Shown: positions 26,170 through 53,863 of the stretch, piece by piece
How the letters are laid out: each line of letters opens with the position of its first letter
Position numbering within the stretch: position 1 is the stretch's first letter
Source: Raja brachyura
Lineage: Eukaryota
Direction of reading: 5' to 3'
Length of the DNA stretch: 64,000 nt
Assembly: GCA_963514005.1 (NCBI GenBank)
Contig: OY740790.1
Span: 4,960,001-5,024,000, forward strand
Notes under the pieces: generated by a model
Told to the model about the DNA's origin: nothing
Databases searched by the model: none
The model's input: the letters and a program-made list of their open reading frames with translations, nothing else
Translations under genes and position numbers: made by a program

Positions 26170-29100
26170 CATAGAAACATAGAAACATAGAAAATACGTG
26201 CAGGAGTAGGCCATTCGGACCTTCGAGCCAATACCGCCATTCATTCATGGCTGATCATCCCCAATCAATAACACGTGCCTGCCTCATATCCCTTGATTCC
26301 ACCAGCCCCTAGAGCTCTATCTAACTCTCTCTTAAATCCATCCAATGATTTGGTCTCCACTGCCCTCTGTGGCAGGGAAATCCACAAATTCACAACTCTC
26401 TGGGTGAAAAAGTTTTTTCTCACCTCAGTCTTAAATGGCCTCCCCTTTATTCTAAGACTATGGTCCCTGGTTCTGGACTCGCCCAACATTGGGAACATTT
26501 TTTCCTGCATCTAGCTTGTCCAGTCCTTTTATAATTTTATATGTTTCCATAAGACCCCTCCCCCTCATCCTTCTAAGCCTCAGTGAATAGAAGCCTAGTC
26601 TTTTCAATCTTTCCTCATATGACAGTCCCACCATCCCAGGGATCAATCTCGTGAACCTATCCTGCACTGCCTCAATCACAACAATGTCTTTCCTCAAATT
26701 AGGAGACCAAAACTGTACGCAATACTCCAGATGTGGTCTTACCAGAGCCCTATACAACTGCAGACGAACCTCTTTACTCCTATACTGAAATCCTCTAGTT
26801 ATGAAGGCCAACATTCCATTCGCTTTCTTCACTGCCTGCTGTACCTGCACGCCAACTTCCAGTGACTGGTGTACAAGGGCACCCAGGTCTCGCTGTATCT
26901 TCATCTTACCTAACCTAACCTCATTGAGATAATAATCTGCCCCCTTGTTTTTGCCGCTAAAGTGGATAACCTCACATTTATCTATATTATACTGCATCTG
27001 CCAAGCATCTGCCCACTCACTCAAACTGTCCAGGTCACCCTGCAACCTCCAAACATCCTCTTCACAGTTCACACTTCCGCCCAGCTTTGTGTCATCCGCA
27101 AACTTGCTAGTGTTGCTCCTAATTCCCTCTTCCAAATCATTAATATATATGGTAAACAGTTGCGGCCCCAACAGAAAGCCTTGCGGCACTTCACTCGCCA
27201 CTGCCTGCCATTCGGAAAAGGACCTGTTCACTCTTACTCTTTGCTTCCTGTCTTCCAACCAATTTTCTATTCATGTCAACACCCTACCCCCAATACCATG
27301 TGCTCTAATTTTAGTCACCAGTCTCCCGTGCGGGACCTTATCAAATGCTTTCTGAAAGTCTAGATACATTACATCCACTGGCTCCATTACATTACATTAT
27401 ACAGATACATTACATCCATCCTTCATCCATTTTACTTGTCGCATCCTCAAAAAATTCTAGATTAGTCAAGCATGATTTTCCTCTCATAAATCCATGCTGA
27501 CTTGGACTAATCCTTTTACTGCTATCCAAATGCCCCATTATTACCTCTTTAATAATTAACCAGCATCTTTCCCACCACCGAAGTCAGGCTAACTGGTCTG
27601 TAATTCCCCGTTTTCTCTCTCGCTCCTTTTTTGAAAAGTGGGATAACATTAGATATCCTCCAATCCACAAGAACTCATCCTGAATTTATTGAGCATTGAA
27701 AAATGATCACCAATGCATCCACTATTTCTAGAGCCACCTCCCTGAGGACCCTGGGATGCAGACCATCAGGCCCCGGCGATTTATCATCCTTCAGTCCCAT
27801 TAGCCTACCCTATACTATTTCTCGCCTAATGAAAATGTATTTCAGTTCCTTTACTCCCTTAGATCCTCTGTCCTCCAATACGTCTGGGCGATTGTGTGTG
27901 TCTTCCTTAGTGAAGACAGATCCGAAGTACCCGATCAACTCTTCTGCCATTTCCTTGTTCCCCATAATATTTTCACCCGTGTCTGCTTCAAGGAACCCAC
28001 ATTTGACTTAGCTATAATTTTTCTCTTAACATATCTAAATAAGCTTTTACTGTCCTTCCTTATATTGCTGGCCAGCTTCCCCTCGTACTTCATCTTTTCA
28101 GCCCGTATTGCGCGTATTGTTTCCTTCTGTTGTCTGATGAACGTTTCCCAATCCTCTGGCTTCCGGCTACTCTTTGCTGTGTAATACATCTTTTCTTTTA
28201 GTTTTATTCTATCCCTAACTTCTCTTGTCAGCCACGGTTGCCTCCTACTCCCCTTAGAATATTATTTTCCTTTTTGGAATGAAATGATCCTGCATCTTCC
28301 GGATTATGCCCAGAAATTCTTGCCAATGGTGTTCCACCATCATTCCTGCTCGGATCCCTTTCCAGTCTACCTTGGCCAGCTCCTCTCTCATGGCTTCATA
28401 GTCCCCTTTGTTCAACTACATCACTGAAACTTCCAATTTAACGTTCTCCTTCTCAAATTGCAGATTAAAACTAATCATATTATGATCACTACCTCCAAGT
28501 GGTTCCTTTACCTCGAGTTCTCTTATCAAATCTGGTTCATTGGACAACACTAAATCCCAAATTGCCTTTTCTCTGGTCGGCTCCATTACAAGCTGCTCTA
28601 AGAATCCATCTCGGAGGCACTCTACAAACGCCCTTTCTTGGGGCCCTGAACCAACCTGATTTTCCCAGTCTACCTGAATATTGAAATCCCCCATCACCAC
28701 AGTGGCATTACCTTTGTTACATGTCAGTTTTGACTCCTGCTGCAACTTACACCCTACATCCGGGCTACTATTTGGGGGTCTGTAGATAACACCAATTAGT
28801 GTCTTCTTGCCTTTGCAATTCCTCAACTCAATCCACAGTGACTCTACCTCTTCAGTCCCTATGTCTTCCCTCGCAAGGGACTGAATTCCATCCCTCACCA
28901 GCAGAGCGACCCCCCCCCCCCCTCCTCTGCCCACCTGCCTGTCCTTTCTATAGGATGTATAACCCTGAATATTAAGTTCACAGGCCCGATCCTCCTGCAG
29001 CCACGTCTCAGTATTTCCCACAATGTCATATCTACCAACTTCTAACTGAGCCTCAAGCTCATCTACTTTACTTCTTATACTTCGTGCATTCATATACAAT

Positions 29101-29280
29101 ACTTTTAATTCCTCACGCATCTCACCTTTCACATCGATCCCTATTACACTTGGCCATACTCTTCTATCCCTTTGTGAGCTTTCTTTCCCGTTAATTCTGG
29201 GGTCATTAACTATCCCTTTCCTCCCTTTCCCTTTAACTCCGTCCGTGACTATCCCATTTGACACCCCGCCCCTTATTGTC
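26170..29280 (-). mobile_element. CR1 LINE with near-complete but degenerate ORF2 (endonuclease + RT)
   Basis: MNARS, ETWL, GDFN, SDH (APE endonuclease); PQG, FADD (RT); RPHLEYC; (TTTCTATG)n tail. Confidence 0.93.
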
Positions 29281-29403
29281 CCAGACTGCATCATCTGTTG
29301 GCCGTAGTGTGGTGAGGATTGGAGAGTCAGAGAACAGTGTAGTCAGGAATGGACGGTCACAGTGTGGGTGTCACAAAGTATCTCTGTCGTTGGTCATCGT
29401 TAC

Positions 29404-29543
29404 CTTGACAACGGTGACGAAGGTACTGTAGAGGAAACTGATAATGAACAGGATGGCGAAGGCAGCAACTGTGAGCACATTGTCATCACCATCCAAGTCC
29501 CCCGGCTCCTCCTTCCCTTCCTCTCCTGTCAAGTCTGTGCCGG
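29404..29543 (-). CDS. IgW TM1 exon
   Basis: (A)GTDLTGEEGKEEPGDLDGDDNVLTVAAFAILFIISFLYSTFVTVVK: acidic spacer and CART motif FLYST; AAG|gtaacg donor; alternative in-frame acceptor at 29534. Confidence 0.92.
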
Positions 29544-30470
29544 CTTCAGGACAAATGAGAAGGTGAGACAGTTAGTTTGCCGCAGATGTTTTGAGAAGAT
29601 CAACAACGTGTGAATAAAATGAAGACAACAGGAGGACAGGAAGACAGGAGGCTCAGGTCAGTTCCACCGTTCAATCATATGTGGAGATCTATCACCAGCT
29701 CCACTGAGCTGACTTTCCCCCACATCCATTAACATCTCGTATAGTCAAACTCTGCAATCTCAGATTTAAAATCACCTTCAGACCTGGAACCAAATGCTAA
29801 CTGTGGAAGGCTATTCCAAACTTCCATGAACCTCTGATAGATGCAAAAAGCTGGAGTAACTCAGTGGGACAGGCAGTATCTCTGGAGAGAAGGAATGGAT
29901 GAGGTTTCGCGTCGAGACCCTTCTTCAGACGCCATGACCCACTTCCATGCAGCATGGCTGCCTCTAACTTTTAGATACTGTACTTTGTATAAAGTTGGAT
30001 TTCCATCAATCAGGGAGATCATTTGTAACCCAGGGAGCACTGTACACAACTAAAAAATAATTCCTCCTCATCTAGTTAGTTTAGTTTATTGTCACGTGTA
30101 CCGAGGTACAGTGAAAAGCTTTTGTTGCGTGCTAACCAGTCAGCGGAAAGACAAAATATGATTACAAATGAGTCATTCACAGTGTATACATACATGATAA
30201 GGGATTAACCTTTAGTGCAAGGTAAAGCCAGTAAAGTCCGATCAAAGATAGTCCGAGGGTCTCCAGTGAGGGAGATAGTAGTTCAGGACCGCTCTCTGGT
30301 TGTGGTAGGGTGATTCAGTTGCCTGATAACAGCTGGGAAGAAACTGTCCCTGAATGTGGAGGTGTGTAAATAGTTCTTCCCAGGAAAATCTATTCCGTTA
30401 GCTCCCATTAACTTTGTGAAAACACCAAATAAATCTTCCTTTAGCCTTCTAAATGACAACTTATTCAGCA

Positions 30471-31170
30471 TCATGAAAGTAAGCATGCAGGTAGGTACAG
30501 CAGGCAGTGAAGAAAGTGAATGGCATGTTGGCCTTCATAACAAGAGGAGTTGAGTCTTGGAGCAAAGAGGTCCTTCTGCAGTTCTACCGGGCCCTAGTGA
30601 GACCACACCTGGAGTATTGTGTGCAGTTTTGGTCCCTTAATTTGAGGAACGGCATTCTTGCTATTGAGGGAGTGCCGCGTAGGTTTACAAGGTTAAATCC
30701 CAGGATGGTGGGATTATCATATGCTGAGAGAATGGAGCGGTTGGGCTTGTATAGTCTAGAGTTTAGAAGGATGAGAGGTGATCTTATTGAAACATATAAG
30801 ATTATTAAGGGTTTGGACATGCTAGATGCAGGAAACACGTTACCGATGTTGGGCGAGTCCAGAACCAGGGGCCACAGTTTAAGAATAAGGGGTACGCCAT
30901 TTAGAATGGAGACGAGGAAACGCTTTTTCACACAGAGAGTTGTGAGTCTGTGGAATTTTCTGCCTCCGAGGGCGGTGGAGGCTGGTTCTCTGGATACTTT
31001 CAAGAGAGAGATAGACAGGGCTCTTAAAGATAGACAAGATAGTCAGGGGATATGGGGAGAAGGCAGGAACGGGGTACTGATTGTGGATGATCAGCCATGA
31101 TCACATTGAATGGCTGTGCTGGTTTGAAGGGCCGAATGACCTACTCCCGCACCTATTGTCTATTGTCTAT
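30471..31170 (+). mobile_element. CR1 3' fragment
   Basis: ORF 30507-31100 with RPHLEYC...RRMRGDLIE. Confidence 0.88.
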
Positions 31171-34100
31171 TTGGGTGTGGTCCACACACATTTAAAGAGC
31201 TGGTTCTTGCCACAGATTTGCCCATTCACTTCATGTATCCTTATCTCAGCAAGGACACCATCCAGATGCTCTGTTGACACTTCTGCTTGCCTTGTGTGAG
31301 CGGCAAACGTGATCGTGTGGCTTTCTATCCGACATCTCAACTATCAATAAATATAGTGAATACCTTCAGCCCTGAACACATTTCCACAGGCAAAGCTCAT
31401 CACTGGCCCTTCCTTCTGTAACTTTCCACTTTCTGAATGCGTTTATGAAATGCATTCACGAAGATGATCAAAACACCTTTCCCTATTCTTTAGCTTTGAA
31501 TATTTTAAAGACCAGAAAGGTTCATCAGGAATGTGTGGGAAGGAACTGCACATGCTGGTTTACACCGAAGATAGACACAAAATGCTGGAGTAACTCTGTA
31601 GGACACGCAGCATCTCTGGGTAGAAGGAATGGGTGATGGTTCGGGGTCGAGACCCTCCTTCAGAATGCTGTATTCTTTGGACGGAGACTAATACATGTAT
31701 ATTTACATAATCTGTAGAAATATATAGAGTGAAAGACAATGTGCAATCTTAGATCCAGGTCACCTGTTCCCCACCAACTTGGCAACACCTCCCAAAACGC
31801 ACCAACAGGGAACACCAACTCCAACACTACATGTCTATTCTTTATTGAACATTGATAGGTTACATTGACACAAACACACATGCAGCCTCTCGTGGGGTCT
31901 CTGCAGGTTTCAAGCTGGATCAGCCTGACACAAAGACGTTTTCATACAAACTGCAAGTTCTCTGAAACTTTGGTAATTAATGTTTCAAGGGCCAAGAGAG
32001 TTTTATTGTCATGTGTCCCAGATAGGACAATGAAATTCTTGCTTTATGCAGCACAACAGAATATGTAAACATAATACAGAACAAGAGATAAAAGTTCAGT
32101 GTGTCTATAGACCATATATATATACACAATAAATAAACAGATAAAAGTGCAATAGGCTGTTATTGTTCAGAGTTTGTTTGATGACCTGATGGCTGTGGGG
32201 AACTGCCTATTCCTGAACCTAGATGTTCCAGATTTCAAGCCCCTGTATCTTCTTCCCGATGGCAACGGAGAGATGAGTGTGGCCAGAATGGTGGGGGTCT
32301 TTGATGATGTTGGCAGCCTTTTTGAGGCAGCGACTGTGATAGATCCCTTCGATGGTGGGGAGGTCAGAGCCGATGATGGACTGGGCAGTGGTCACAACGT
32401 TCTGCATTCTTTTCCGTTCCTGGATGTTCAAATTGCCGAACCAAGCCATGATGCAACCAGTTATGTTTAACCAAAAAGTTATGTTTGATATGGATTTGGT
32501 CTGGAATCCATTTTCATTCTCAGTTGCCGTTCTCTCCCTGGCTGAGTAATGTACACCGATGTGAACCCTGGAACACCAGTCTGCACGAGGCACTGCATAG
32601 CAGTGACTTTCTGGAGAGACATTCCTTTTGCTCAAGAGTAGCAACTGCTCAACTAACCACAACATGGTCTTGTTACTGTCGGCACAATATCACAGAGGAG
32701 ATAACCACATTTGACAGAGTGCAGGAGATGATTAGACACACAGATGTACAACCAGGCTCCTTTACCCAGAGTAGGGCAATCAAGAGCCAGAGGACATGGG
32801 TTTAAGGTGAGGGGGACAGATTTAATGGGAATCCGAGGGGCAACTTTTCCACACAGAGGGCACTGGGTCCATGGAATGTGCTGCGGGAGGAGGTAGTTGA
32901 TGCAGAGACTATAACAATGTTTAAAAGTTATTTGGACAGCTACATGGATAGGACGAATAGTGAAAGGCCTGGATAAAGCGGATGTAAAGAGGATGATTCC
33001 ACTGGTGGGAGAGTCGAGGACCATAGCCTCAGAATTAAAGGATGTTCCTCTAGGAAGATGAGGAGGAATTTGTTTAGTCACAGGGTAGAGAATCTGAGGG
33101 ATTCATTGCCACAGAAGGCTGTGGAGTCCCACTCAATGGGTATTTTTAAAGCAGATATAGATCGATTCTTGATTAGTATTGGTGTCAAGGGGAGAAGGCA
33201 GGAGAATGGGGTTAGGAAGGAGAGATAAATCAGCCAGGATTGAATGGCAGACTATACTTGATGGGCTGAATGGCCTAATTCTGCTCCTATCAATTATGGA
33301 CTTGAGATGTTCAGTGATTTGGGCCAAACACGGGGAGACAGGACTAGTGTAGATCAGGCACCTTGGTTGGCAAAGGCAAGCTGAGCCGAAGGGCCTGTTA
33401 CCGTCCTGTAGAAATCTATGGCTCCATGATCACTCCAATGCCAACATGGTTGTACCCAGCTCCATCCACACAATGGACTTTCTGATGGACCTCTTTTCCA
33501 GTGTCGACAAACAATTGTACAAGTACAAATACTCGACCCCACTCTTCAAATTAGCAGCAAGACAACTAGTCTGAGATGCCACACACAGAGGGCCGACAAC
33601 AATAAGTGGACTGACCCTGTGACACTAATTTTGAAGAACAGCAGGCTTGGTCTTCTCAGTGTCCTGGCTACTGAGGAGTTTTGGAATAAACTCAAGTTGT
33701 GAAAGCACAGAAATATTTAGCATTGTGTCCTAGTTCTGGTTGCATTGTGGCCTGATTCGGCAACTTGAACGTCCAGGAGCAAAAAAGACTACAAAAAGTT
33801 GTAACCACTGCCCAGTTCATCGCCGGCTTTGACCTCCGCACCGTCAAAGGGATCTTTCATAGTCGCTGCCTCAAAAAGGCAGCCAAAATCATCAAGGACC
33901 CACACCATCCTGGCCACACACTCATCTCACCATTGCCATCAGGAAGAAGTTACAGGAGCCTGAAAACTGTAACGTTCAGGTACAGGAACAGCTTCTTCCC
34001 TGCAGCCATCAGGCTATTAAACACAATGAATAAGCTCTGAGCTCTGAACTGCAAAATACTATATTATTGTTTGTTATTTGCACTATTTGTTATTTATTGA

Positions 34101-34375
34101 ACTTTTTCTTTTTTTCTCTTCCCCCATTATGCACTATGTTTACATATTCACATATTCTGTTGTGCTGCAGCAAGTAAGAAATTCATTGTCCCGTCCGCAT
34201 ATGACAATAAAACACTCTTGACTCTTCTTGACTCTAGTCCAGGCCTCTTGATTATCACTCACTCACTCACTCACTCACACACTGCAACATCTGTCCTTCA
34301 GTGCTAAACTTGCCTGGCCCCTATTTTGTGATGGGGTAAAAGATGTGATCATTAGAGTGAATCCCAGCACGCTAC

Positions 34376-34693
34376 CTTGAAAGCTTTTCACTTCCCCGCT
34401 GATACTGGTGTTCGAGGGGGGATGAGACACTGTACAGCTGAAGACTGAGCCTTTCTTCCAATCCTCTGAACTCACAGTCAGGAAATGACTCGCACTGAAA
34501 GTCCCCCCCTGCTCCAGAGCAGTCGGTGTAGCGCTGGTGGTGGAGGAGATCGGGGCTCCGTCTTTCTCCCAAGTGATGTTTATGAGGTCCGGGTAGAAAC
34601 CAGAGAGCACACACTCGAGGGTGGCTGTGTGGCTACGCTTGGTCTCTTCATGAGCTGGAGGCAGCAGTCTGACCTTGGGTTTTTTTGTTTCAA
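34376..34693 (-). CDS. IgW CH4-like exon, cassette 6 (B6)
   Basis: 318 nt, cag|...|gtagc, C1-set LECVLSGFYP..W..FSCTVSH. Confidence 0.92.
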
Positions 34694-34735
34694 CTGGAAC
34701 AGAGGAGCAAAGTAAATGTGAGACCCTCTTCCTCA

Positions 34736-35041
34736 AGGGCCTGTCCCAATTACGCGATTTTTTTCGTCGAAAGTTTTCAGCATGTTGAATATCCAGCGGC
34801 CACCAGAAAAAGGTACGAATCTTTGGGCAACTACTCACGACCATACAGGCTTCACTCCGCAACATGACGCCAGGGTGTCGCCTGTATGTTCATGAGTAGT
34901 CTCCTCAGTCACCCAAAGAGTCGGACTGTCTTTCTGGAATTTTCCAGAACTTTCAACATGTTGAATATTTTCGCCGACCTGCAATGACCTATGACGGGTA
35001 CCGGCAGTCGCCAAAAAAGTCGTGTAAGTGGGACAGGCCCA
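34736..35041. mobile_element. Palindromic Harbinger-like MITE; further copies at 36742-37038, 38758-39093, 40794-41132, 48296-48626, 50349-50689
   Basis: Terminal inverted repeats GGGCCTGTCCCA...TGGGACAGGCCC, 3-bp TCA target duplication, internal palindrome. Confidence 0.85.
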
Positions 35042-35087
35042 TCATGGTAACTAATGTTGGCCATATCATTGCCGATCTCTCGCCCAC

Positions 35088-35390
35088 CTTTGGCACTTTC
35101 TGTCCGTGCTGACACTGGTGAGGATGATGGAGATCGTTGGGCAGAGCACACAACCTCCACCCCGCTGGTCCATTCCTCCACACTGCTCCGGAGTTTACTG
35201 CTCACTCTGTCTTGGGTCCTTTCTCCTCTCGGTTGGCGGGTCACAGCCCCTATAGTTCTCTCCCTTCCGCTCACTTGCCAGTAAATTTGGACATGGCTCA
35301 GATCAGCACCCATTACCACGCACACCACAGTAGCGGTCTTGTTGATCCAAATCTCTTCAGTGGAGGGGTTTTGGATAAAGACAGACAATT
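35088..35390 (-). CDS. IgW CH3-like exon, cassette 6 (A6)
   Basis: 303 nt, ctgcag|...AAAG|gtgggc, EEIWINKTATVVC..W..WTSGVEVVC. Confidence 0.92.
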
Positions 35391-35431
35391 CTGCAGATGA
35401 GAAATAGGAAGCTTACAAACCGAACAAGGTC

Positions 35432-36255
35432 TGGTGTTGTCGTCACCAATCAACTGGACTCTGATGACTTGCATTCATTTTCCAGACTCACTTTATTGAC
35501 GTGTGCACAAGGAACAACCTCTCTCTCAATGTCAGCAAAACTAAAGAGATGATTATGGACTACAGGAGATAGCAGGTGAGTGGACACCTCCCATCCACAT
35601 CGGTGATGCTGAGGTTGAAAGGGTCAGCAGCTTCAAGTTCCTCAGTGTGCACATCACTGAGGACCTCTCCTGGACACTGCACACAGACACAATAACAAAG
35701 AAAGCCCGCCAGCGGCTCTTTTTCCTGAGAAGACTGAGCAAGTTTTGCATGAACGCCAGCATCCTCACAAACTTCCACAGATGCACCATCGAGAGCCTGC
35801 TGACGGGCTGCATCACAGTCTGGTACGGGAACTGTTCTGCTCACAGCCGCAAATCACTACAGAGAGTGGTGAAGGCGGCACAGCTCATCACTGGCAACTG
35901 TCTCCTGGCCATTCAGGATATTTTCCACTGGCGGTGCCTGCGGAAGGCACACAGCATCATCAAGAACCACAGCCACCAAGCACGCAGACTGTTCTCCTTG
36001 TTACCGTCAGGCAGACGATACAGGAGCATGGCAGCAAGTACCACCAGACTTAAGAACAGTTTTTACCATCAGGCTACTAGGCTAAATACTCTATCATTAT
36101 TTGTTATTTGCACTATATTTGTTATTTAGTTAACATTCTTTCACTTCCCCCGTTATGCACTATGTTTACATATTCACATATTCTGTTGTGCTGCAGCAAG
36201 TAAGAATTTCCTTGTCCCGTCCGCGACATATAACAATAAAACACTCTTTACTCTA
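35432..36255 (+). mobile_element. Rex1/Babar-like LINE 3' fragment between cassettes; also 37435-38265, 39485-40305, 47372-47805, 49020-49860
   Basis: KKARQRLFFLRRL...CTIES.LTGCITVWYGNC...LQRVVKAAQ; CAATAAAACACTCTT tail. Confidence 0.85.
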
Positions 36256-36381
36256 GTCTATGCCCCTTGATTATCATTCACTCACACACTGCAACACCAG
36301 TCCTTCAGTGCTAAACGTGCCTGGCTCTATTTTGTGATGGGGTAAAAGATGTGATCATTAGAGTGAATCCCAGCACCGTAC

Positions 36382-36699
36382 CTTGAAAGCTTTTCACTTC
36401 CCGGCTGATACTGGTGTTCGAGGGCGGATGAGACACTGTACAGCTGAAGACTGAGCCTTTCTTCCAATCCTCTGAACTCACAGTCAGGAAGTGGCTGGCA
36501 CTGAAAGTCCCCCCCTGCTCCAGAGCAGTCGGTGCAGCGCTGGTGGTGGAGGAGATCGGGGCTCCGTCTTTCTCCCAAGTGACGTTTATGAGGTCCGGGT
36601 AGAAACCAGAGAGCACACACTCGAGGGTGGCTGTGTGGCTATGCTTGGTCTCTTCATGAGCTGGAGGCAGCAGTCTGACCTTGGGACTTTTTGTTTCAA
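36382..36699 (-). CDS. IgW CH4-like exon, cassette 5 (B5)
   Basis: 318 nt open, AG/GT, phase 1/1. Confidence 0.92.
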
Positions 36700-37084
36700 C
36701 TGGAACAGAGGAGCAAAGAAGATGTAAGACCCTCTTCCTCAAGGACCTGTCCCACTTATGTGACTTTTTCGGCGACTGCCGGCACCCGTCATAGGTCGTT
36801 ACAGGTCGCCAAAAATTTTCAACGTGTTGAAAATCAGGCGGCAACCACAACAAGGTGCGACATGTCGCCAGGGTGACGCCTGTATGATCGTGAGTTGTCT
36901 CCTCAGTCGCCCAAAGAGTCATAACATCTTTCTGGTCACCACTGGATTTTCAACATGTTGTATTTTTTTGCCGACCTGCAACTACCTATGACGGGTCCCG
37001 GCAGTCGCCGAAAAAGTCGCGTAAGTGGGACAGGCCCATCATGGTAACTAATGTTGGCCATATCATTGCCGATCTCTCGCCCAC

Positions 37085-37387
37085 CTTTGGCACTTTCTGT
37101 CCGTGCTGACACTGGTGAGGATGATGGAGATCGTTGGGCAGAGCACACAACCTCCACCCCGCTGGTCCATTCCTCCACACTGCTCCGGAGTTTACTGCTC
37201 ACTCTGTCTTGGGTCCTCTCTCCTCTCGGTTGGCGGGTCACAGCCCCTGTAGTTCTCTCCCTGCCGCTCACTTGCCAGTAGATTTGGACCTGGCTCAGAT
37301 CAGCACCCATTACCACGCACACCACAGTAGCGGTCTTGTTGATCCAAATCTCTTCAGTGGAGGGGTTTTGGATAAAGACAGACAATT
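37085..37387 (-). CDS. IgW CH3-like exon, cassette 5 (A5)
   Basis: 303 nt open, AG/GT, phase 1/1. Confidence 0.92.
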
Positions 37388-38397
37388 CTGCAGATGAGAA
37401 ATAGGAAGCTTACAAACCAGACAAGGTCTGGTGTTGTTGTCACCGATTAACTGGACTCTGACGACTTGCATTCATTTTCCAGACTCACTTTACTAACGTG
37501 TGCACAAGGAACAACCTCTCTCTCAATGTCAGCAAAACTAAAGATGATCATGGACTACAGGAGACAGCAGGTGAGTGGACACCTCCCATCCACATCGGTG
37601 ATGCTGAGGTTGAAAGTGTCAGCAGCTTCAAGTTCCTCAGTGTGCACATCACTGAGGACCTCTCCTGGATACTGGACACATGCACATTAACAAAGAAAGC
37701 CCGCCAGCGGCTCTTTTTCCTGAGAAGACTGAGCAAGTTTGGCATGAACGCCAGCATCCTCACAAACTTCTACAGATGCACCATCAAGAGCCTGCTGACG
37801 GGCTGCATCACAGTCTGGTACGGGAACTGTTCTGCTCACAGCCGCAAATCACTACAGAGAGTGGTGAAGGCGGCACAGCTCATCACTGGCAACTGTCTCC
37901 TGGCCATTCAGGACATTTTCCACTGGCGGTGCCTGCGGAAGGCACACAGCATCATCAAGGACCACAGCCACCCAGCACACAGACTGTTCTCCTTGTTATC
38001 GTCAAGCAGACGATACAGGAGCATTGCTGCAAGTACCACCAGACTTAAGAACGGTTTTTACCATCAGGCCATCAGGCTAAATACACTATCATTATTTGTT
38101 ATTTGCACTACATTTGTTATTTATTGAACTTTTTCTTTTTTTCTCTTACCCCGTTATGCACTATGTTAACATATTCACATATTCTGTTGTGCTGCAGCAA
38201 GTAAGAATTTCCTTGTCCCGTCCGGGACATATAACAATAAAACACTCTTGACTCTTCTGGACTCTAGTCCAGGCCTCTTGCTTATCACTCACTGACTCAC
38301 ACACAGCAACACCTGTCCTTCAGTGCTAAACGTGCCTGGCCCCTATTTTGTGATGGGGTAAAAGATGTGATCATTAGAGTGAATCGCAGCACCGTAC

Positions 38398-38715
38398 CTT
38401 GAAAGCTTTTCACTTCCCGGCTGATACTGGTGTTCGAAGGGGGATGAGACACTGTACAGCCGAAGACTGAGCCTTTCTTCCAATCCTCTGAACTCACAGT
38501 CAGGAAGTGGCTGGCACTGAAAGTCCCCCCCTGCTCCAGAGCAGTCGGTGTAGCGCTGGTGGTGGAGGAGATCGGGCCTCCGTCTTTCTCCCAAGTGACG
38601 TTTATGAGGTCCGGGTAGAAACCAGAGAGCACACACTCGAGGGTGGCTGTGTTGCTCTGCTTGGTCTCTTCATGAGCTGGAGGCAGCAGTCTGACCTTGG
38701 GACTTTTTGTTTCAA
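38398..38715 (-). CDS. IgW CH4-like exon, cassette 4 (B4)
   Basis: 318 nt open, tag acceptor, gtacgg donor. Confidence 0.92.
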
Positions 38716-39139
38716 CTAGAACAGAGGAGCAAAGTAGATGTGAGACCCTCTTCCTCAAGGGCCTGTCCCACTTACGTGACTTTTTCGGCGACTGCCGGCA
38801 CCCGTTATAGGTCGTTACAGGTCGACACAAATTTTCAACATGTTGAAAATCCAGCGGCGACCAGAACAAGGTACGACTCTTTGGGCGACTACTCACGACC
38901 ATGCAGGCTTCACCCCATGACATGTCGCCAGGTCGCCTGTATGGTCGTGAGCAGTCTCCTCAGTCGCCCAAAGAGGCGTAGCGTCTTCCGAGTCACCGCT
39001 GGATTTTCAACGTTGAAATTTTTCAGCCACCTGCAACGACATTTGACGGGTCCCAGCAGTCGCCAAAAAAGTTGCGTAAGTGGGACAGGCCCAACATGGT
39101 AACTAATGTTGGCCATATCATTGCCAATCTCTCGCCCAC

Positions 39140-39442
39140 CTTTGGCACTTTCTGTCCGTACTGACACTGGTGAGGATGATGGAGATCGTTGGACAGAGCA
39201 CACAACCTCCACCCCGCTGGTCCATTCCTCCACACTGCTCCGGAGTTTACTGCTCACTTTGTCTTGGGTCCTTTCCCCTCTCGGTTGGCGGGTCACAGCC
39301 CCTGGAGTTCTCTCTCTTCCGCTCACTTGCCAGTAGATTTGGACCTGGCTCAGATCAGCACCCATTACCACGCACACCACAGTAGCGGTCTTGTTGATCC
39401 AAATCTCTTCAGTGGAGGGGTTTTGGATAAAGACAGACAATT
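39140..39442 (-). CDS. IgW CH3-like exon, cassette 4 (A4)
   Basis: 303 nt open, AG/GT. Confidence 0.92.
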
Positions 39443-40433
39443 CTGCAGATGAGAAATAGGAAGCTTACAAACCGGACAAGGTCTGGTGTTGTCGTCACCG
39501 TTCAACTGGACTCTGACGACTTGCATTCATTTTCCAGACTCACTTTACTAACATGTGCACAAAGAACAACCTCTCTTTCAATGTCAGCAATACTAAAGAG
39601 ATGATTGTGGACTATAGGAGCCAGCAGGGGAGTGGACACCTCCCATCCACATCGGTGATGCTGAGGTTGAAAGTGTCAGCAGCTTCAAGCTCCTCAGTGC
39701 GCACATCACTGAGGACCTCACCTGGACACTGCACACGGACACAATAACAAAGAAAGCCCGCCAGCGGCTCTTTTTCCTGAGAAGACTGAGCAAGTTTGGC
39801 ATGAACGCCAGCATCCTCACAAACTTCTACAAATGCACCATCGAGAGCCTGCTGACGGGCTGCATCACAGTCTGGTACGGGAACTGTTCTGCTCACAGCC
39901 GCAAATCACTACAGAGAGTGGTGAAGGCGGCACAGCTCATCACTGGCAACTGTCTCCTGGCCATTCAGGACATTTTCCACTGGCGGTGCCTGCGGAAGGC
40001 ACACAGCATCATCAAGGACCACAGCCACCCAGCACAAGACTGTTCTCCTTGTTACCGTCAAGCAGACGATACAGGAGCATGGCTGCAAGTTCCACCAGAC
40101 TTCAGAACGGTTTTTACCATCAGGCCATCAGGCTAAATACTATATTATTTGTTATTTGCACTACATTTGTTATGTATTGAACTTTGTTTCTCTTCCCCCG
40201 TTATGCACTATGTTTACATATTCACACATTCTGTTGTGCTGCAGCAAGTAAGAATTTCCTTGCCGCGTCCAGGACATATGACAATGAAACACTCTTGACT
40301 CTAGTCTAGGCCTCTTGGTCATCACTCACTCACTCACACACTGCAACACCTGTCCTTCAGTGCTAAACTTGCCTGGCTCTAATTTGTGACGGGGTAAAAG
40401 ATGTGATCATTAGAGCGAATCCCAGCACCGTAC

Positions 40434-40751
40434 CTTGAAAGCTTTTCACTTCCCGGCTGATACTGGTGTTCGAGGGGGGATGAGACACTGTACAGCCGAA
40501 GACTGAGCCTTTCTTCCAATCCTCTGAGCTCACAGTCAGGAAGTGGCTCGCTCTGAGAGTCCCCCCCTGCTCCAGAGCTGTCGGTGTAGCGCTGGTGGTG
40601 GAGGAGATCGGGGCTCCGTCTTTCTCCCAAGTGACGTTTATGAGGTCCGGGTAGAAACCAGAGAGCACACACTCGAGGGTGGCTGTGTTGCTATGCTTGG
40701 TCTCTTCATGAGCTGGAGGCAGCAGTCTGACCTTGGGACTTTTTGTTTCAA
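40434..40751 (-). CDS. IgW CH4-like exon, cassette 3 (B3)
   Basis: 318 nt open, AG/GT. Confidence 0.92.
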
Positions 40752-41178
40752 CTAGAACAGAGGAGTAAAGTAGATGTGAGACCCTCTTCCTCAAGGGCCT
40801 GTCCCACTTACGTGACTTTTTCGGTGACTGCCGGCACCCGTCATAAGTCGTTACAGGTCGTCCAAAATGTTCAACATGTTGAAAATCCAGCGGCGACCAG
40901 AACAAGGTACAACTCTTTGGGCAACTGCTCACGACCATACAGGCTTCACCCCATGACATGTCACCAGGGTGTCGCCTGTATGGTCGTGAGTAGTCTCCTC
41001 AATCGCCCAAAGAGTCGTAGCGTCTTCCTGGTCACTGCTGGATTTTCAACGTTGAAAATTCTCAGCCACCTGCAACGACCTATGACGGGTCCCAGCAGTC
41101 GCCAAAAAAGTCGCGCAAGTGGGACAGGCCCATCATGGTAACTAATGGTGGCCATATCATTGCCAATCTCTCGCCCAC

Positions 41179-41481
41179 CTTTGGCACTTTCTGTCCGTGC
41201 TGACACTGGTGAGGATGATGGAGATCGTTGGGCAGAGCACACAACCTCCACCCCGCTGGTCCATTCCTCCACACTGCTCCGGAGTTTACTGCTCACTCTG
41301 TCTTGGGTCCTTTCACCTCTCGGTTGGTGGGTCACAGCCCCTGTAGTTCTCTCCTTTCCGCTCACTTGCCAGTAGATTTGGACCTGGCTCAGATCAGCAC
41401 CCATTACCACGCACACCACAGTAGCGGTCTTGTTGATCCAAATCTCTTCAGTGGAGGGGTGTTGGATAAAGACAGACAATT
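41179..41481 (-). CDS. IgW CH3-like exon, cassette 3 (A3)
   Basis: 303 nt open, AG/GT. Confidence 0.92.
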
Positions 41482-43258
41482 CTGCAGATGAGAAATAGGA
41501 AGCTTACAAACCGGACAAGGTCTGGTGTTGTCGTCACCGATCAACTGGACTCTGACGACTTGCATTCATTTTTCAGACTCACTTTATTGACGTGTGCACA
41601 AGGAGAGCAGCACAGTCCCAGTTACCTGCTGCCCTGAAATTCCACTCAGCATTTATACAGAGTTTGACCCTTGAAATTATGCACACTCTAATTTCTTATA
41701 ATCAAACACAATACATTCTCCTCAACACTTATACAAATACATTAACACTAACACAAATAAAACTACATGCTGTTCAATTCTTTATTGGTATTTAATTTCA
41801 GTGCACCATGGAAAGCATTTTATCGGGATGCATCACAGCATGGTTTGGGAACAGCTCCATCCAAGAAATAGCAGCGAATTGCGGTTGCAGACCAGATCAT
41901 CGCGCAAACTAACCTCCCTTCCACTGACTCCATTTACATCTCACGCTGCCTCGGCAGGGCCAGCAGCATAATCAAGGACCAGTCACACCCTGGCCACTCT
42001 CTCTTCTCCCCTCTCCCATCAGACAAAAAGTATAGAAGTGTGAAAACGCACACCTCCAGATTCAGGGACAGTTTCTTCCCAGCTGTTATCAAGCAACTGA
42101 ACCACCCCCTCACCAACCAGAGCGCAGTCCTGAGCAATCACTGGAGACCCTCGGACTACGTTTAATCGGACATTACCTTGCACAAAATATTATTCCCTTC
42201 TTCATGTATCTGTATACTGTGGAGGGCTTGATTGTAATTATATAGTCTTTCTGGTGACTGGTTAGCACGCAACAAAAAACATTTTCACTGTACCTCGGTC
42301 TACGTGACAATAAACCAAACCAAACAACCCTCGGCCCACACAATGGGCATTGCATCCCCCACCCTACACCATTACTCCTTCCACCATCGACACTTCACGC
42401 TGCCTCAGGAAAGCAGCCAACATCATCAAGGAACCCACATCCCAGTCATTGTCTCTACTCCCCTCTCCAGATGATACAAGAAGCTTGAAATCACGTAGCA
42501 GCAGGTTCAAGAACAGATTTACTTTAAGCACCAACTGGCAGATGTTTAATTGTAACATTGGAATAGAAGAGTTACCAATGATGAGTTGTCTCTTGTATTC
42601 AACATCATCCATGCACACCCACTGAGGACAGAGACTCCTCAAACAACTATCCCCCTTGTTAGACACAGATGTCATGTGTGGCTCAGTGGTGAGCAATGTC
42701 TCCTCATGAAAGCTGCTGTCTTTGGGATGAGGCTTTAAGGAGGTGCTTCTCAGGTAGATGTCAGCAAAGCCACGACATGACCACGACTGTTCTGCTCAGA
42801 GTCCTGAGCTAATATTTATCCTGAAACCAAACAGCTAAACACAGGTGGGCTGTGGGAAGTGAGGGGAAAGAGGGAGAAAGCAAGGACTACCTGACGCAGG
42901 AGATGTGGCCAGATTTGGTTTGCCGTGTGGGAGCTTGCACCAGGTACATTGTCACAGCTGGGCTAAGAAAGACCATGGTCCAATCAGTTCACCTTGTGTC
43001 ACCCTGACGGTCGCATGGCAGAGTGATAATGGAGTTAATGACCAACAACCACAATCAATCTCTGTCTTCAACTGGTCCAGGCGTGGGTGTCAGAACACCC
43101 AATTGTGGAAGGTTTTGGACACATTGATCCAACAAAACCTCTTTCTCCCAGAATGTGCTTCTCCTAGAACGTGCACACCTCACATCCCAGCTACCCATGT
43201 ACTGCCACCCAAAACACACCAGTCACAGACACGCACACAAAACATTTTTCACATCATA

Positions 43259-43264
43259 TTTATT
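43259..43264 (-). terminator. Poly(A) signal of the long secreted IgW form
   Basis: AATAAA ~300 nt after the stop at 43557. Confidence 0.6.
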
Positions 43265-43556: not shown

Positions 43557-43942
43557 TTACACACAAGATTTAAAGCTATCAGCCAGAACAAGTGAGACAT
43601 TGACCAGGGTGGGTTTGCTGTGAGATTTATTGATGCTTCTGAATAGGCTGGTTGTGATGGACCCGTGTCCCACAACACAGGAGAAGGTGGTGCCACTGTT
43701 CCACTCCTCTGGAGAAACCTTCAACTGACTGGTCATGGTGTTCCACCCATTCCTGGTGTCCTTGGTCACGGGCTGGTTCATGATCCCTGTCTTCAGAAGG
43801 GTGTCGTTGGCCATCCAGGCCACATAGATGTCTGCAGGAGAGAATCTGGTGACCAGGCACGTCAAGGTGGCCGTCTCATCCGTCTCCACCTCATCCAATG
43901 AAGGGGGGAGGAGGTAGACTTGAGGACGACTCTCAACTCCAT
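43557..43942 (-). CDS. IgW CH6 with long-form secretory tailpiece
   Basis: RPQVYLLPPS..TLTCLVTRFSPADIYVAW..FSCVVGH, then KPTLVNVSLVLADSFKSCV* (NVS glycan site, penultimate Cys). Confidence 0.95.
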
Positions 43943-46748: not shown

Positions 46749-47069
46749 CTGTCGGCTTCTCCAAGGATCTGCTCTCCGGTGTTGGCAAACTCTTGTCCTC
46801 CACAACACAGGTGTACAGAGCCCCACTGTCCCACTCTGCAGCGGGGACCGTCAGTCCGCTGGTGATGGTGTCTGTACCTCCGATCCTCTCTGCACCACGT
46901 GTTGTCACCCCGTCTTCTCTCTTCATTCCATTCACTTGCCAGGTTACCCTGAATCCCTCTAAATCACCGTGAACCACCTTACACAGAATGGTGGCTGTCT
47001 TGTTGATCCAGATCTCTTCGAAGGAAGGTTTGCTTAAAGTGACCGAGGGGCGGGTAACTGAACATTCAT
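46749..47069 (-). CDS. IgW CH5 exon
   Basis: 321 nt; DECSVTRPSVTLSKPSFEEIWINKTATILCKV..W..WDSGALYTCVVED; cccag/gtacgt. Confidence 0.93.
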
Positions 47070-47935
47070 CTGGGAGAAATCACAATTATTATGTCATCGT
47101 TCCCTGATGGAGCAGCTTGCCACTGAAGTATTTTGTGCTCATCTCCACCGAATGATATGCCAGTCCCATCAACATCAGGGAGATTTATCTACATTGGTGT
47201 AGGAATGAAGCTTCCTATTGATCCCACAAGGAAACCTTGCTAAACAATGTGAATTAACACGTTGACTTTTACATTAATTGACAGTTTTGTGATCACTGAA
47301 CCTGTTACCAGCTATTTACTGAATCAAATGTATAAAATTTCCATTGAGAGGCAAATCAAGCTAATATTTGAGGTACGGGAACTGTTCTGCTCACAGCCGC
47401 AAATCACTACAGAGAGTGGTGAAGGCGGCACAGCACATCACTGGCAACTGTCTCCTGGCCATTCAGGACATTTTCCAGTGGCGGTGCCTGCGGAAGGCAC
47501 ACAGCATCATCAAGGACCACAGCCACCCAGCACACAGACTGTTCTCCTTGTTACCGTCAGGCAGACGATACAGGAGCATGGCTGCGAGTTCCACCAGACT
47601 TAAGAACGGTTTTTACCATCAGGCCATCAGGCTAAATACTATATTATTATTTGTTATTTGCACTACATTTGTTATGTATTGAACTTTTTTTCATTTCCCC
47701 CGTTATGCACTATGTTTACATATTCACATATTCTGTTGTGCTGCAGCAAGTAAGAATTTCCTTGTCCCGTCCAGGACATATGACAATGAAACACTCTTGA
47801 CTCTAGTCTAGGCCTCTTGGTCATCACTCACTCACTCACACACTGCAACACCTGTCCTTCAGTGCTAAACTTGCCTGGCTCTAATTTGTGACGGGGTAAA
47901 AGATGTGATCATTAGAGTGAATCGCAGCACCGTAC

Positions 47936-48253
47936 CTTGAAAGCTTTTCACTTCCCGGCTGATACTGGTGTTCGAGGGGGGATGAGACACTGTACAGACG
48001 AAGACTGAGCCTTTCTTCCAATCCTCTGAACTCACAGTCAGGAAGTGACTCGCACTGAAAGTCCCCCCCTGCTCCAGAGAAGTTGGTGTAGCGCTGATGG
48101 TGGAGGAGATCGGGGCTCCGTCTTTCTCCCAAGTGACGTTTATGAGGTCCGGGTAGAAACCAGAGAGCACACACTCGAGGGTGGTTGTGTTGCTCTGCTT
48201 GGTCTCTTCATGAGCTGGAGGCAGCAGTCTGACCTTGGGTCTTTTTGTTTCAA
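47936..48253 (-). CDS. IgW CH4-like exon, cassette 2 (B2)
   Basis: 318 nt open, AG/GT. Confidence 0.92.
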
Positions 48254-48672
48254 CTGGAACAGAGGAGCAAAGTAGATGTGAGACCCTCTTCCTCAAGGGC
48301 CTGTCCCACTTATGCGAACTTTTCGTCGACTGCTGGCACCCGTCATAGGTCGCCGAAAATGTTAAACATGTTGAAATACCAGCGGCGACCAGAACAAGGT
48401 GCGACTCTTTGGGCGACTATTCACGACCATATAGGCTTCACCCCGCGACATGTCGCCAGGGTGTCGCCTGTATGTTCGTGAGTAGTCTCCTCAGTCGCCC
48501 AAAGAGTAGTAGCGTCTTCCTGGTCACCGCTGGATTTTCAATATGTTGACAATTTTCAGCCACCTGTAACGACCTATGACAGGTCCCAGCAGTTGCCAAA
48601 AAAGTCACGTAAGTGCGATAGGCCCATCATGGCAACTAATGTTGGCCATATCATTACCAATCTCTCGCCCAC

Positions 48673-48975
48673 CTTTGGCACTTTCTGTCCGTGCTGACAC
48701 TGGTGAGGATGATGGAGATCGTTGGGCAGAGCACACAACCTCCACCCCGCTGGTCCATTCCTCCACACTGCTCCGGAGTTTACTGCTCACTCTGTCTTGG
48801 GTCCTTTCTCCTCTCGGTTGGTGGGTCACAGCCCCTGTAGTTCTCTCCCTTCCGCTCACTTGCCAGTAGATTTGGACCTGGCTCAGATCAGCACCCATTA
48901 CCACGCACACTACAGTAGCGGTCTTGTTGATCCAAATCTCTTCAGTGGTGGGGTTTTGGATAAAGACAGACAATT
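48673..48975 (-). CDS. IgW CH3-like exon, cassette 2 (A2)
   Basis: 303 nt open, AG/GT. Confidence 0.92.
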
Positions 48976-49988
48976 CTGCAGATGAGAAATAGGAAGCTTA
49001 CAAACCGGACCAGGTCTGGTGTTGTCGTCACCGTTCAACTGGACTCTGACGACTTGTATTTATTTTCCAGACTCACTTTACTAACGTGTGCACAAAGAAC
49101 AACCTCTCTCTCTCAATGTCAGCAAAACTAAAGAGATGATCGTGGACTACAGGAGACAGCAGAGGAGTGGACACCTCCCATCCACATCGGTGATGCTGAG
49201 GTTGAAAGGGTCAGCAGCTTCAAGTTCCTCAGTGTGCACATCACTGAGGACCTCACCTGGGCACTGCACACGGACACAATAACAAAGAAAGCCCGCCAGC
49301 GGCTCTTTTTCCTGAGAAGACTGAGCAAGTTTGGCATGAACGCCAGCATCCTCACAAACTTCTACAAATGCACCATCGAGAGCCTGCTGACGGGCTGCAT
49401 CACAGTCTGGTACGGGAACTGTTATGCTCACAGCCGCAAATCACTACAGAGAGTGGTGAAGGCGGCACAGCACATCATTGGCAACTGTCTCCTGGCCATT
49501 CAGGACATTTTCCACTGGCGGTGCCTGCGGAAGGCACACAGCATCATCAAGGACCACAGCCACCCAGCACACAGACTGTTCTCCTTGTTACCATCAAGCA
49601 GACTATACAGGAGCATGGCTGCAAGTACCACCAGACTTAAGAACAGTTTTTAGCATCAGGCCATTAAGCTAAATACTATATTATTATTTGTTATTTGCCC
49701 TACATTTGTTATTTATTGAACTTTTTCATTTTATCCCTTCCCCCGTTATGCACTATGTTTACATATTCACATATTATGTTGTGTTGCAGCAAGTAACAAT
49801 TTCTTTGTCCCGTCCGGGACATATGACAATAAAACACTCTTGACTGTTCTTGACTCTAGTCTGGACCGCTTGGTCATCACTCACTCACTCACACACTGTA
49901 ACACCTGTCCTTCACTGCTAAACGTGCCTGGCCCTATTTTGTGACGGGGTAAAAGATGTGATCATTAGAGTGAATCCCAGCACCGTAC

Positions 49989-50306
49989 CTTGAAAGCTTT
50001 TCACTTCCCGGCTGATACTGGTGTTCGAGGGGGGATGAGACACTGTACAGCCAAAGACTGAGCCTTTCTTCCAATCCTCTGAGCTCACAGTCAGGAAGTG
50101 GCTGGCACTGAAAGTCCCCCCCTGCTCCAGAGCAGTCGGTGTAGCGCTGGTGGTGGAGGAGATCGGGGCTCCATCTTTCTCCCAAGTGACGTTTATGAGG
50201 TCCGGGTAGAAACCAGAGAGCACACACTCGAGGGTGGCTGTGTTGCTATGCTTGGTCTCTTCATGAGCTGGAGGCAGCAGTCTGACCTTGGGACTTTTTG
50301 TTTCAA
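49989..50306 (-). CDS. IgW CH4-like exon, cassette 1 (B1)
   Basis: 318 nt open, AG/GT. Confidence 0.92.
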
Positions 50307-50735
50307 CTAGAACAGAGGAGTAAAGTAGATGTGAGACCCTCTTCCTCAAGGGTCTGTCCCACTTACGTGACTTTTTCGGTGACTGCCGGCACCCGTCATA
50401 AGTCGTTACAGGTCGTCCAAAATGTTCAACATGTTGAAAATCCAGCGGCGACCAGAACAAGGTACGACTCTTTGGGCGACTACTCACGACCATGCAGGCT
50501 TCACTCCATGACATGTCGACAGGGTGTCGCCTGTATGTTCGTGAGTAGTCTCCTCAGTCGCCCAAAGAGTCGTAGCATCTTCCAGGTCACCGCTGGATTT
50601 TCAACATGTTGACAATTTTCAGCCACCTGTAACTACCTATGACGGCTCCTAGCAGTCGCCAAAAAAGTTGCGTAAGTGGGACAGGCCCATCATGGTAACT
50701 AATGTTGGCCATATCATTGCCGATCTCTCGCCCAC

Positions 50736-51038
50736 CTTTGGCACTTTCTGTCCGTGCTGACACTGGTGAGGATGATGGAGATCGTTGGGCAGAGCACACA
50801 ACCTCCACCCCGCTGGTCCATTCCTCCACACTGCTCCGGAGTTTACTGCTCACTCTGTCTTGGGTCCTTTCTCCTCTCGGTTGGTGGGTCACAGCCCCTG
50901 TAGTTCTCTCCCTTCCGCTCATTTGCCAGTAGATTTGGACCTGGCTCAGATCAGCACCCATTACCACGCACACCACAGTAGCGGTCTTGTTGATCCAAAT
51001 CTCTTCAGTGGAGGGGTTTTGGATAAAGACAGACAATT
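50736..51038 (-). CDS. IgW CH3-like exon, cassette 1 (A1)
   Basis: 303 nt open, AG/GT. Confidence 0.92.
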
Positions 51039-51271
51039 CTGCAGATGAGAAATAGGAAGCTTACAAACCAGACAAGGTCTGGTGTTGTCGTCACCGATCA
51101 ACTGAACTCTGACGACTTGCATTCATTTTTCAGACTCCCTTTATTGACGTGTGCACAAGGAGAGCAGCACAGTCCCAGTTACCTGCTGCTCTGAAATGCC
51201 ACTCAGCATTGATACAGAATTTGACCCTTGAAATTATGCATACTCTACTTTCTTATAATCGAACACAATAC

Positions 51272-51822
51272 ATAGATAAATGTGAGGTTATCCACTTTGG
51301 TGGCAAAAACAAGGGGGCAGATTATTTTCTCCATGGCGTTAGGTTAGGTAAGGGGGAGGTACAGCGGGACCTGGGTGTCCTTGTACACCGATCACTGAAA
51401 GCTAGCATGCAGATACAGCAGGCAGTGAAGAAAGCTAACGGAATGTTGGCCTTCATAACAAAAGGATTTCAGTACAGGACTAGAGAGGTTCTTCTGCAGT
51501 TGTATAGGGCTCCGGTAAGACCACATCTGGAGTATTGCGTACAGTTTTGGTCTCCTAATTTGTGGAAGGACATCCTTGTGATTGAGGCAGTGCAGCATAG
51601 GTTCACGAGATTGATCCCTGGGATGGCGGGACTGCCATTTGAGGAAAGATTGAAAAGACTAGGCTTGTATTCACTGGAGTTTAGAAGGATGAGGGGGGAT
51701 CTTATAGAAACATATAAAATTATACAAGGACTGGACAAGCTAGATGCAGGAAAAATGTTCCCAATGTTGGGCGAGTCCAGAACCAGGGGTCAGTCTTAGA
51801 ATAAAGGAGAGGCCATTTAAGA
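51272..51822 (+). mobile_element. CR1 fragment, paralogous copy of 45547-46097
   Basis: Shares private variants with it (CTCCATGG, GCTAGC, AATTTGTGGAAGG, ACTGCCATTT, CCAGGGGTCAGTCTT). Confidence 0.8.
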
Positions 51823-52699: not shown

Positions 52700-53017
52700 C
52701 TTGGATGTTCTTCGCATCCTTCGTGATGATGGTGTTGGAGGCACGATGATGCACTGTACAATTGAAGCGTGAGCCAGACTTCCAATCCTCGGTACTCATG
52801 GTCAGGAAGTGGCTGGCACTGAAAGTGCCCCCCTGCTCCAGAGCAGTTGGTGCAGCGCTGGTGTTGTTGAAGATCAGGGCACCGTCTCTACTCCAAGTGA
52901 CGTTGATGAGGTCTGGGTAGAATCCAGAGACCACACACTCCAGGGTGACCTTGTGGCTACGCTTGGTCTCTTCGTGTGCTGGAAGCAGCAGTCTGACTTC
53001 AGGTTTTTTTGGCTCAA
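52700..53017 (-). CDS. IgW CH4 exon
   Basis: 318 nt; VEPKKPEVRLLLP..LECVVSGFYP..W..FNCTVHH; ccag/gtaggc. Confidence 0.93.
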
Positions 53018-53560: not shown

Positions 53561-53863
53561 CTTTTTTATAGTTGGTCCGCGCTGACATTGGTGAGGATGA
53601 TGAAGATCGTTGGGCGAAGCACACAAACTCCACCCCGCTGGTCCACTCCTCCACGCTGGTCCGCAGTTCACTGGTCACTGGGTTTCGGGTGCCTTCATGG
53701 CTCGGTCTACGTGTCACAACTCCTTTACTTCTCTCCTTCCCTCCCACCTTCCAGGTGAAATGTACCTGGCTCGGATCACTACAGAACACTGAACACACCA
53801 GCGTAGCGGTCTTGTTGATCCAAATCTCTTCCATGCCAGGATTTTGAATGAAGATGGACAATA
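53561..53863 (-). CDS. IgW CH3 exon
   Basis: 303 nt; SIFIQNPGMEEIWINKTATLVC..W..WTSGVEFVC; cacag/gtgggc. Confidence 0.93.

Follow-up and report, generated by a model that had tools for sequence, protein, structure and literature searches.

The 64,000-nt stretch of the skate Raja brachyura genome analysed here (contig OY740790.1 of assembly GCA_963514005.1, positions 4,960,001 to 5,024,000; hereafter the window) carries on its minus strand the constant region of one heavy-chain cluster of IgW, an immunoglobulin (Ig) isotype orthologous to IgD. Four pairs of constant exons, each made of a CH3-like exon (A) and a CH4-like exon (B), lie between the exon encoding the secretory end of the chain and the first transmembrane (TM) exon, TM1. 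As a rule, the two chain forms made from a single antibody gene, membrane and secreted, have all their constant (C) domains in common. Taking the evidence as a whole, the best explanation of this locus is probably that the four post-secretory A/B cassettes are coding only in the membrane form. The interpretation is partly supported: gene anatomy, selection and the genes of relatives argue well for it, and the transcripts of this species do not add support.

Constant exons beyond the secretory end

The exon map was obtained from open frames, self-BLAST and splice-site inspection; all exon positions given below are on the minus strand. The constant exons follow one another in the order CH1-CH2-CH3-CH4-A1-B1-A2-B2-CH5-CH6, with the secretory tailpiece and polyadenylation (poly(A)) signal at CH6, and then A3-B3 to A6-B6 and TM1. 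The post-secretory array is preceded by a 112-nt leader (41605–41716) and comprises A3 (41179–41481), B3 (40434–40751), A4 (39140–39442), B4 (38398–38715), A5 (37085–37387), B5 (36382–36699), A6 (35088–35390) and B6 (34376–34693), the last one ahead of TM1; the CH3-like exons encode A-type and the CH4-like exons B-type C1-set domains. The pairs recur with a period of about 2.0 kb and sit, on the same strand, between the poly(A) signal that follows the tailpiece exon on their 5′ side and TM1 on their 3′ side. A first-pass annotation of this region had placed four such pairs, at this period, between the CH6 tail with its poly(A) signal and TM1, and our re-derivation reproduced its coordinates together with the exon order, open frames, phase-1 splice sites and Cys and Trp residues that it described.

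CH6 (43557–43942) ends in an IgM-like, Cys-terminated tailpiece, KPTLVNVSLVLADSFKSCV, followed by the stop codon (43557–43559). With exons searched singly, the tail is 79–95% identical to the tails in RefSeq IgW models, and the CH6 exon 83–95% identical to CH6 in ray and skate RefSeq IgW models. The secreted form has its poly(A) signal, AATAAA, at 43259–43264, about 295 nt past the stop, with additional ATTAAA occurrences nearby at 43444 and 43303. The usual internal donor of CH6, GGTAAA at the IgM-type position, reads AGCAAA here. Because CH6 ends in a stop without a usable in-phase donor, a CH5-containing transcript ends as the secreted form.

No conserved secretory end was found downstream of the A3–B6 array, in agreement with the first-pass annotation, which had noticed no secretory tail there. 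The downstream pairs might nevertheless end another secreted isoform, through read-through of a B donor into a short Cys-containing tail with a nearby poly(A) signal. In units 4 and 6, read-through adds a tail of 33 residues that finishes in KDRCC(C/S)V before a stop (38297–38397 and 34275–34375, respectively); AATAAA follows about 170 nt past the stop at 38125 and 34098, and truncated secreted IgW forms with two and four C domains are on record. The tail frame is, however, broken by a one-base difference, leading to an early stop, in the other four units, the tail bears no similarity to what ray or electric-ray models have on read-through, and it sits in fast-evolving flank. We regard such a second secreted end as very unlikely.

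TM1 (29404–29543), with a phase-1 acceptor and a phase-0 donor, encodes an acidic spacer and a membrane span ending LYSTFVTVVK. It is 84% identical to the Tm form of horn shark (Heterodontus) IgW, whose entry was its only match in a set of 5.8 billion proteins, and 89–91% identical to sawfish, stingray and manta models. In the same set the only match of the B6 exon was a genomic read-through open reading frame (ORF) from a ray. The best match of TM1 in a search of representative proteins, P0003, was rejected as an unrelated low-complexity protein. Simple acceptor and short-ORF patterns did not find a TM2 exon, which may lie beyond a long interspersed nuclear element (LINE) at 28.4–29.3 kb. The endonuclease ORF of this LINE (28416–29294) sits directly past TM1.

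On the other side of the secretory end, CH1 (about 59271–59573) and CH2 (about 57764–58108) are followed by the original CH3 (53561–53863) and CH4 (52700–53017), A1 (50736–51038), B1 (49989–50306), A2 (48673–48975), B2 (47936–48253) and CH5 (46749–47069). The V, D and J segments of the cluster would lie upstream of CH1, at the high end of the window or past it. In Pfam comparisons the A, B, CH5 and CH6 exons score as C1-set, with one domain per exon. Searches by tblastn with every exon translation found no further Ig exon in the window, and no Ig exon or CH5/CH6-like piece between B6 and TM1. There are no runs of N between 29 and 60 kb; N runs occur at 6689–6906 and 17067–17203.

We propose that two exclusive paths lead through this locus. 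In the secreted path, the B2 donor would join the CH5 acceptor, and the transcript would run through CH5 and CH6 to the stop, with cleavage directed by the AATAAA at 43264. The predicted secreted chain, CH1-4 plus A1-B2, CH5 and CH6, would have 10 C domains. In the membrane path, the transcript would have to pass the secretory poly(A) site, and CH5 and CH6 would be left out, as happens in sharks when CH4 is spliced to TM; A3 would then offer the next acceptor. Splicing would proceed onward from A3-B3 to A6-B6, and a B donor would finally join TM1; the B exons are paralogues of CH4 with the same donor context. Given the CH6 stop, the missing donor and the lack of a later secretory end, A3–B6 would be coding only in TM1 transcripts that skip CH5 and CH6. 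This membrane-only logic, put forward in the first-pass annotation, holds on our analysis, since the CH6 stop, the AGCAAA at the internal donor site and all splice phases fit it. The maximal membrane chain would carry up to 16 C domains. A chain of about that size had also been predicted before, and the phases allow it; the figure stands as a deduced upper bound, TM transcripts having been looked for in RNA without one being seen (below). Because all cassettes share phase 1, skipped pairs could vary chain length, and pair skipping could in this way tune the length of the membrane chain.

Constraint on the post-secretory exons and counterparts in relatives

All six A exons are 303 nt long and all six B exons 318 nt. 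Each of the eight downstream exons has an open frame between AG and GT, is in phase 1 and retains both Cys residues and the Trp. Across the A and B copies, splice acceptors and donors are identical or almost identical, and the A3 acceptor equals those of A1 and A2 over 30 nt. As TM1 has a phase-1 acceptor and the B exons have phase-1 donors, the cassettes are phase-compatible with the upstream donors and with TM1. Each pair holds three N-glycosylation sequons, as annotated in the first pass. The A/B copies are 96–99% identical among themselves and only 78–80% identical in nucleotide sequence to CH3 and CH4. Copy-specific variants include an Arg-to-Gly change in ISGEVKSFQ of B6 and an Asn-to-His change in FIQHP of A3.

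Constraint was assessed on an alignment of six 1.46-kb unit cores, the headline counts being taken from downstream units 3–6 alone. Variable columns made up 33/621 of the exon positions, compared with 126/760 of the intron positions (odds ratio 0.28, p=1.8e-11); without the very variable A-B intron, 53/416 positions of the outer flanks were variable (p=3e-5). The exons of these units contain no indels, where about 10.6 were expected, against 13 in the introns (P=2.4e-5). For synonymous and nonsynonymous counts the in-frame A and B parts were concatenated. The downstream copies showed nonsynonymous differences of 1.7–3.1%, against an intron divergence of 6.8–10.6%, and the ratio of nonsynonymous to synonymous differences per site (pN/pS) among them was 0.35–0.72, the first-pass annotation having proposed a dN/dS comparison of the copies. 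In a simulation at each copy's intron substitution rate, all eight frames stayed open in 0.8% of trials. Because gene conversion would erase intron and exon differences alike, the contrast between them is best read as selection, and we infer from it that selection acts on the A3–B6 exons themselves.

Two kinds of repeated non-Ig sequence accompany the units. An imperfect palindrome of about 340 nt, 70–78% self-complementary, recurs in each A-B intron as well as in that between CH3 and CH4 (38759–39092, 40795–41131, 36743–37037, 48297–48625, 50350–50688 and 53917–54263). It is the fastest-evolving part of the unit and may be a miniature inverted-repeat transposable element (MITE)-like element or something else. 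Each unit also contains, antisense to the gene, a fragment of a transposon-derived ORF whose only Pfam match is ALKBH8_N (35513–36081, 37510–38076, 39565–40132, 49098–49668 and 47372–47631), and a diverged ORF of this type is found immediately past the array (33765–34040). At the far end of the window, positions 1–16100 hold three occurrences of retrovirus-like pol and env ORFs, two of them on the plus strand and one on the minus strand.

A search of 1.84 billion representative proteins with TM1, followed by cluster look-ups, led to RefSeq models in rays, skates and sharks, whose domains were annotated against the exons of the window. In the manta Mobula birostris, isoform X2 (XP_072126119) reads CH1-CH2, five CH3/CH4-type pairs, CH5, CH6 and tail, and isoform X1 (XP_072126131) has the same five pairs followed by one A/B-type pair and TM. 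The extra manta pair is present only in TM isoforms, where it replaces CH5-CH6, and its A domain groups with the A-type domains of the window; isoforms X3–X5 each lack one pair. A full-length model from M. hypostoma comprises a variable (V) domain, CH1-2, six pairs and TM. In the sawfish Pristis pectinata, the model of LOC127576491 reads CH5, CH6 tail, A-B, A-B, TM, with the stop bridged by an invented 32-residue exon. The model is collinear with the genome, and the sawfish genomic order therefore matches that of the skate in an independent assembly. In the bamboo shark Chiloscyllium, the TM isoform reuses the four pairs of the secreted isoform and lacks a membrane-only pair. RefSeq thus already models long membrane IgW in rays and bamboo shark. 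The largest ray model, Hypanus sabinus LOC132381361, has 20 C domains, made up of eight pairs together with CH1, CH2, CH5 and CH6.

The model closest to the window, at 81–95% identity per exon, is from the skate Rhinoraja longicauda and reads V, CH1, CH2, A, B, CH3, CH4, CH5, CH6. The position of A-type pairs along the secreted path differs from cluster to cluster. In a tree of A-like domains, one side of a branch with support 99/96.7 holds 16 A-type domains, contributed by the window, by Rhinoraja, sawfish and the electric ray Narcine, and by the membrane pair of manta; CH3-type domains and the shark pairs lie on the other. This grouping spans four batoid orders, so the A-type lineage predates their split. 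Three observations thus support real use of the post-secretory cassettes: selection on A3–B6, the manta isoforms and the order of the sawfish model.

RNA evidence and the possibility of routine skipping

Sequencing runs were searched for transcripts of the locus, comprising five small runs guessed to be RNA and several DNA runs. Three RNA-like runs and one DNA run were mapped on 29395–35394, which covers TM1, B6 and A6; two of the three runs guessed to be RNA are probably DNA. The mapped intron is full of LINE pieces, and most joints and loose ends there are repeat noise. In one contig of 234 nt from run X1, which derives from another individual or a close relative, the final 68 nt of a B exon are followed exactly by the opening 166 nt of an A exon, so that RNA does show splicing of one cassette to the next. 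That membrane mRNA of this skate takes in A3–B6, and how many of the pairs it takes in, we infer from the layout.

Several observations weigh against this interpretation. The spliced contig differs by three mismatches from each of the B1>A2, B2>A3, B3>A4 and B4>A5 joints and so cannot be assigned to an array, and no RNA contig covering TM1 was found in the three RNA-like runs. The B6 donor (34370–34376), which should splice to TM1, reads GTAGCG where the remaining five B exons have GTACGG, and has lost the G at +5; to judge by this site, the last pair may be used poorly or less. The RefSeq isoforms are automatic gene models, named uncharacterized or titin-like, and carry the weight of predictions. 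A stingray (Hemitrygon) model reads CH1-CH2-TM, which is the known short form. That model and the short published shark forms, with two or four C domains, show that long-range skipping to TM1 occurs, and the published forms count against long membrane chains for that reason. The B-domain tree has no clean B type, and skate CH4 groups with skate B in it, which suggests homogenisation. Finally, 14 of 28 informative pairs of exon sites fail the four-gamete test, so that part of the similarity of the copies is due to gene conversion, with the used upstream copies as the source.

These points could be combined in another way, in which A3–B6 are real exons that are normally skipped, with CH2, CH4 or B2 spliced directly to TM1, and are kept intact only by conversion from the upstream exons. 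The short shark forms, the stingray model, the missing TM1 RNA and the evident conversion all fit such a gene, as does the tree of the units, which is a star and from which the order of duplication in the array cannot be read. Conversion would even out the introns too, yet the exons vary threefold less, with indels at 0 versus 13, and all 16 of the 16 splice sites are kept. The duplication marks described below suggest that the array was intact before the upstream donor copies existed in this cluster, and manta isoform X1 has such a pair ahead of TM. We consider it unlikely that A3–B6 are routinely bypassed, and use in the membrane form remains our preferred explanation.

Proposed duplication history and comparison with known systems

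Self-BLAST revealed three elements in the same order and orientation at two places, 94–96% alike. At the first place, segment X (52012–51830) is followed by segment Y (51822–51272) and by the leader with A1-B1-A2-B2 (51273–47372). At the second, X′ (47375–47193), the stretch just upstream of CH5, is followed by Y′ (46098–45547), a LINE piece between CH5 and CH6, and by the leader with A3-B3-A4-B4 (41716–37817). At this second place CH5 separates X′ from Y′, and CH6, together with its poly(A) region, separates Y′ from the leader. The upstream array on the secreted path (47372–51273) is 94% identical to its downstream counterpart (37817–41716), and the 112-nt leader is seen only ahead of A3 and, in its second copy (51162–51273), ahead of A1. 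Y′ is the inner part of a longer LINE (about 44.3–46.4 kb), and the first copy ends in the inter-unit repeat at 47372, three bases from the start of X′. No CH5 or CH6 coding remnants were found near either array by tblastn, the marks being non-coding only.

These marks could be explained by one tandem duplication of a block X′-CH5-Y′-CH6-leader-A-B-A-B, with later deletions of 1.1 kb, removing the extra CH5, and of 3.8 kb, removing the extra CH6; the post-secretory array would have been amplified to four pairs within the cluster. The sequence arrangement suggests that A1–B2 were copied from the post-secretory array into the secreted path. If so, the earlier state of the cluster would have been CH1-CH6, then A/B pairs, then TM.

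The same marks bear on whether the upstream array, or another IgW cluster, was simply misplaced after CH6 in the assembly. The 2-kb repeat units and the many IgW clusters of the genome invite such an error, and short-read contigs collapse the exons, at about 150x compared with about 48x in unique flanks. Each unit nonetheless has its own substitutions and indels, with 6–11% intron divergence, the region is free of N runs, the leader and the X and Y marks fit a coherent duplication history, and the independent sawfish assembly has the same exon order in its gene model. An assembly artefact is thus, in our estimation, most improbable.

Combining this history with the domain trees, a broader scenario is that an old batoid post-secretory A/B module, predating the split of skates, sawfish, electric rays and the stingray-manta group, supplied the B-cell receptor with domains, or a domain count, not found in the secreted chain of the gene, was amplified fourfold in this skate and seeded the extra secreted domains; we offer it tentatively, leaning slightly to the sceptical side. 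If the membrane-only interpretation is correct, the receptor form of skate IgW would be longer than the secreted form, unlike in sharks, where the membrane form is the shorter one, and would stand on a glycosylated stalk of repeated domains, variable in length by splicing. It would be a cartilaginous-fish counterpart to the long membrane IgD of bony fish and to the coelacanth IgW1 layout, which indicates a recurring, perhaps ancestral, trait of the IgW/IgD lineage. A route to extra secreted domains would also be illustrated, in which a post-secretory block is duplicated and the extra CH5 and CH6 are then lost.

In shark IgW, the tailpiece exon is reportedly the 3′-most C exon (Zhang et al. 2013). 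Within the accessible literature we found no shark, skate or ray for which C exons 3′ of the tailpiece-bearing exon are described, and the layout is new for cartilaginous fish. It is already present, unrecognised, in RefSeq models, and the ray and skate IgW genes filed there as titin-like or uncharacterized need re-annotation.

Shark IgW (nurse shark, horn shark, dogfish) shares with the skate gene the isotype, the TM1 sequence and the tailpiece on the last C exon of the secreted form. Nurse shark clusters carry six to eight C exons, the known membrane forms have two and four C domains and the secreted forms two, four, six or eight, and the membrane form is made by skipping CH5-CH6 from a CH4-type donor (PMC4279169, PMC5192425). 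The earlier statement that shark membrane IgW is mostly shorter than the long secreted form matches these reviews (two or four against up to eight C domains). The same CH5-CH6 skip is predicted in the skate; the difference lies in size, shark membrane forms having only two or four C domains and the skate form, by deduction, up to 16. The manta and sawfish models resemble the skate cluster, with A/B-type pairs between the secretory end and TM and A domains of the same clade; manta has a single such pair and sawfish two, against four in the skate.

The IgD of teleosts and sturgeon, which has repeated Cdelta blocks and long membrane forms of up to 19 CH domains in sturgeon (PMC5192425, PMC6795676), belongs to the orthologous lineage and likewise uses tandem C-exon cassettes in a shared phase, with length varied by splicing. 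There the repeated exons precede the terminal C exons, on the common path, as A1–B2 do in the skate, whereas A3–B6 follow CH6; the teleost and sturgeon cassettes are moreover Cdelta2-3(-4), and their heavy chain is chimeric with Cmu1. The nearest published precedent for the skate layout is coelacanth IgW1, which is described as having seven unique secreted-form exons, four tandem Cw3-4-5 cassettes and then TM (Saha et al. 2014, as summarised in PMC5192425). The coelacanth gene, also of the IgW/IgD lineage, thus has its cassettes past the secretory end and ahead of TM, and this shared design means that the skate layout is not unprecedented. The two differ in that the coelacanth cassette has three exons (Cw3-4-5) and the skate cassette two (CH3/CH4-like), and in that the coelacanth locus, as described there, is a translocon-like locus of a lobe-finned fish and the skate locus a cartilaginous-fish cluster.

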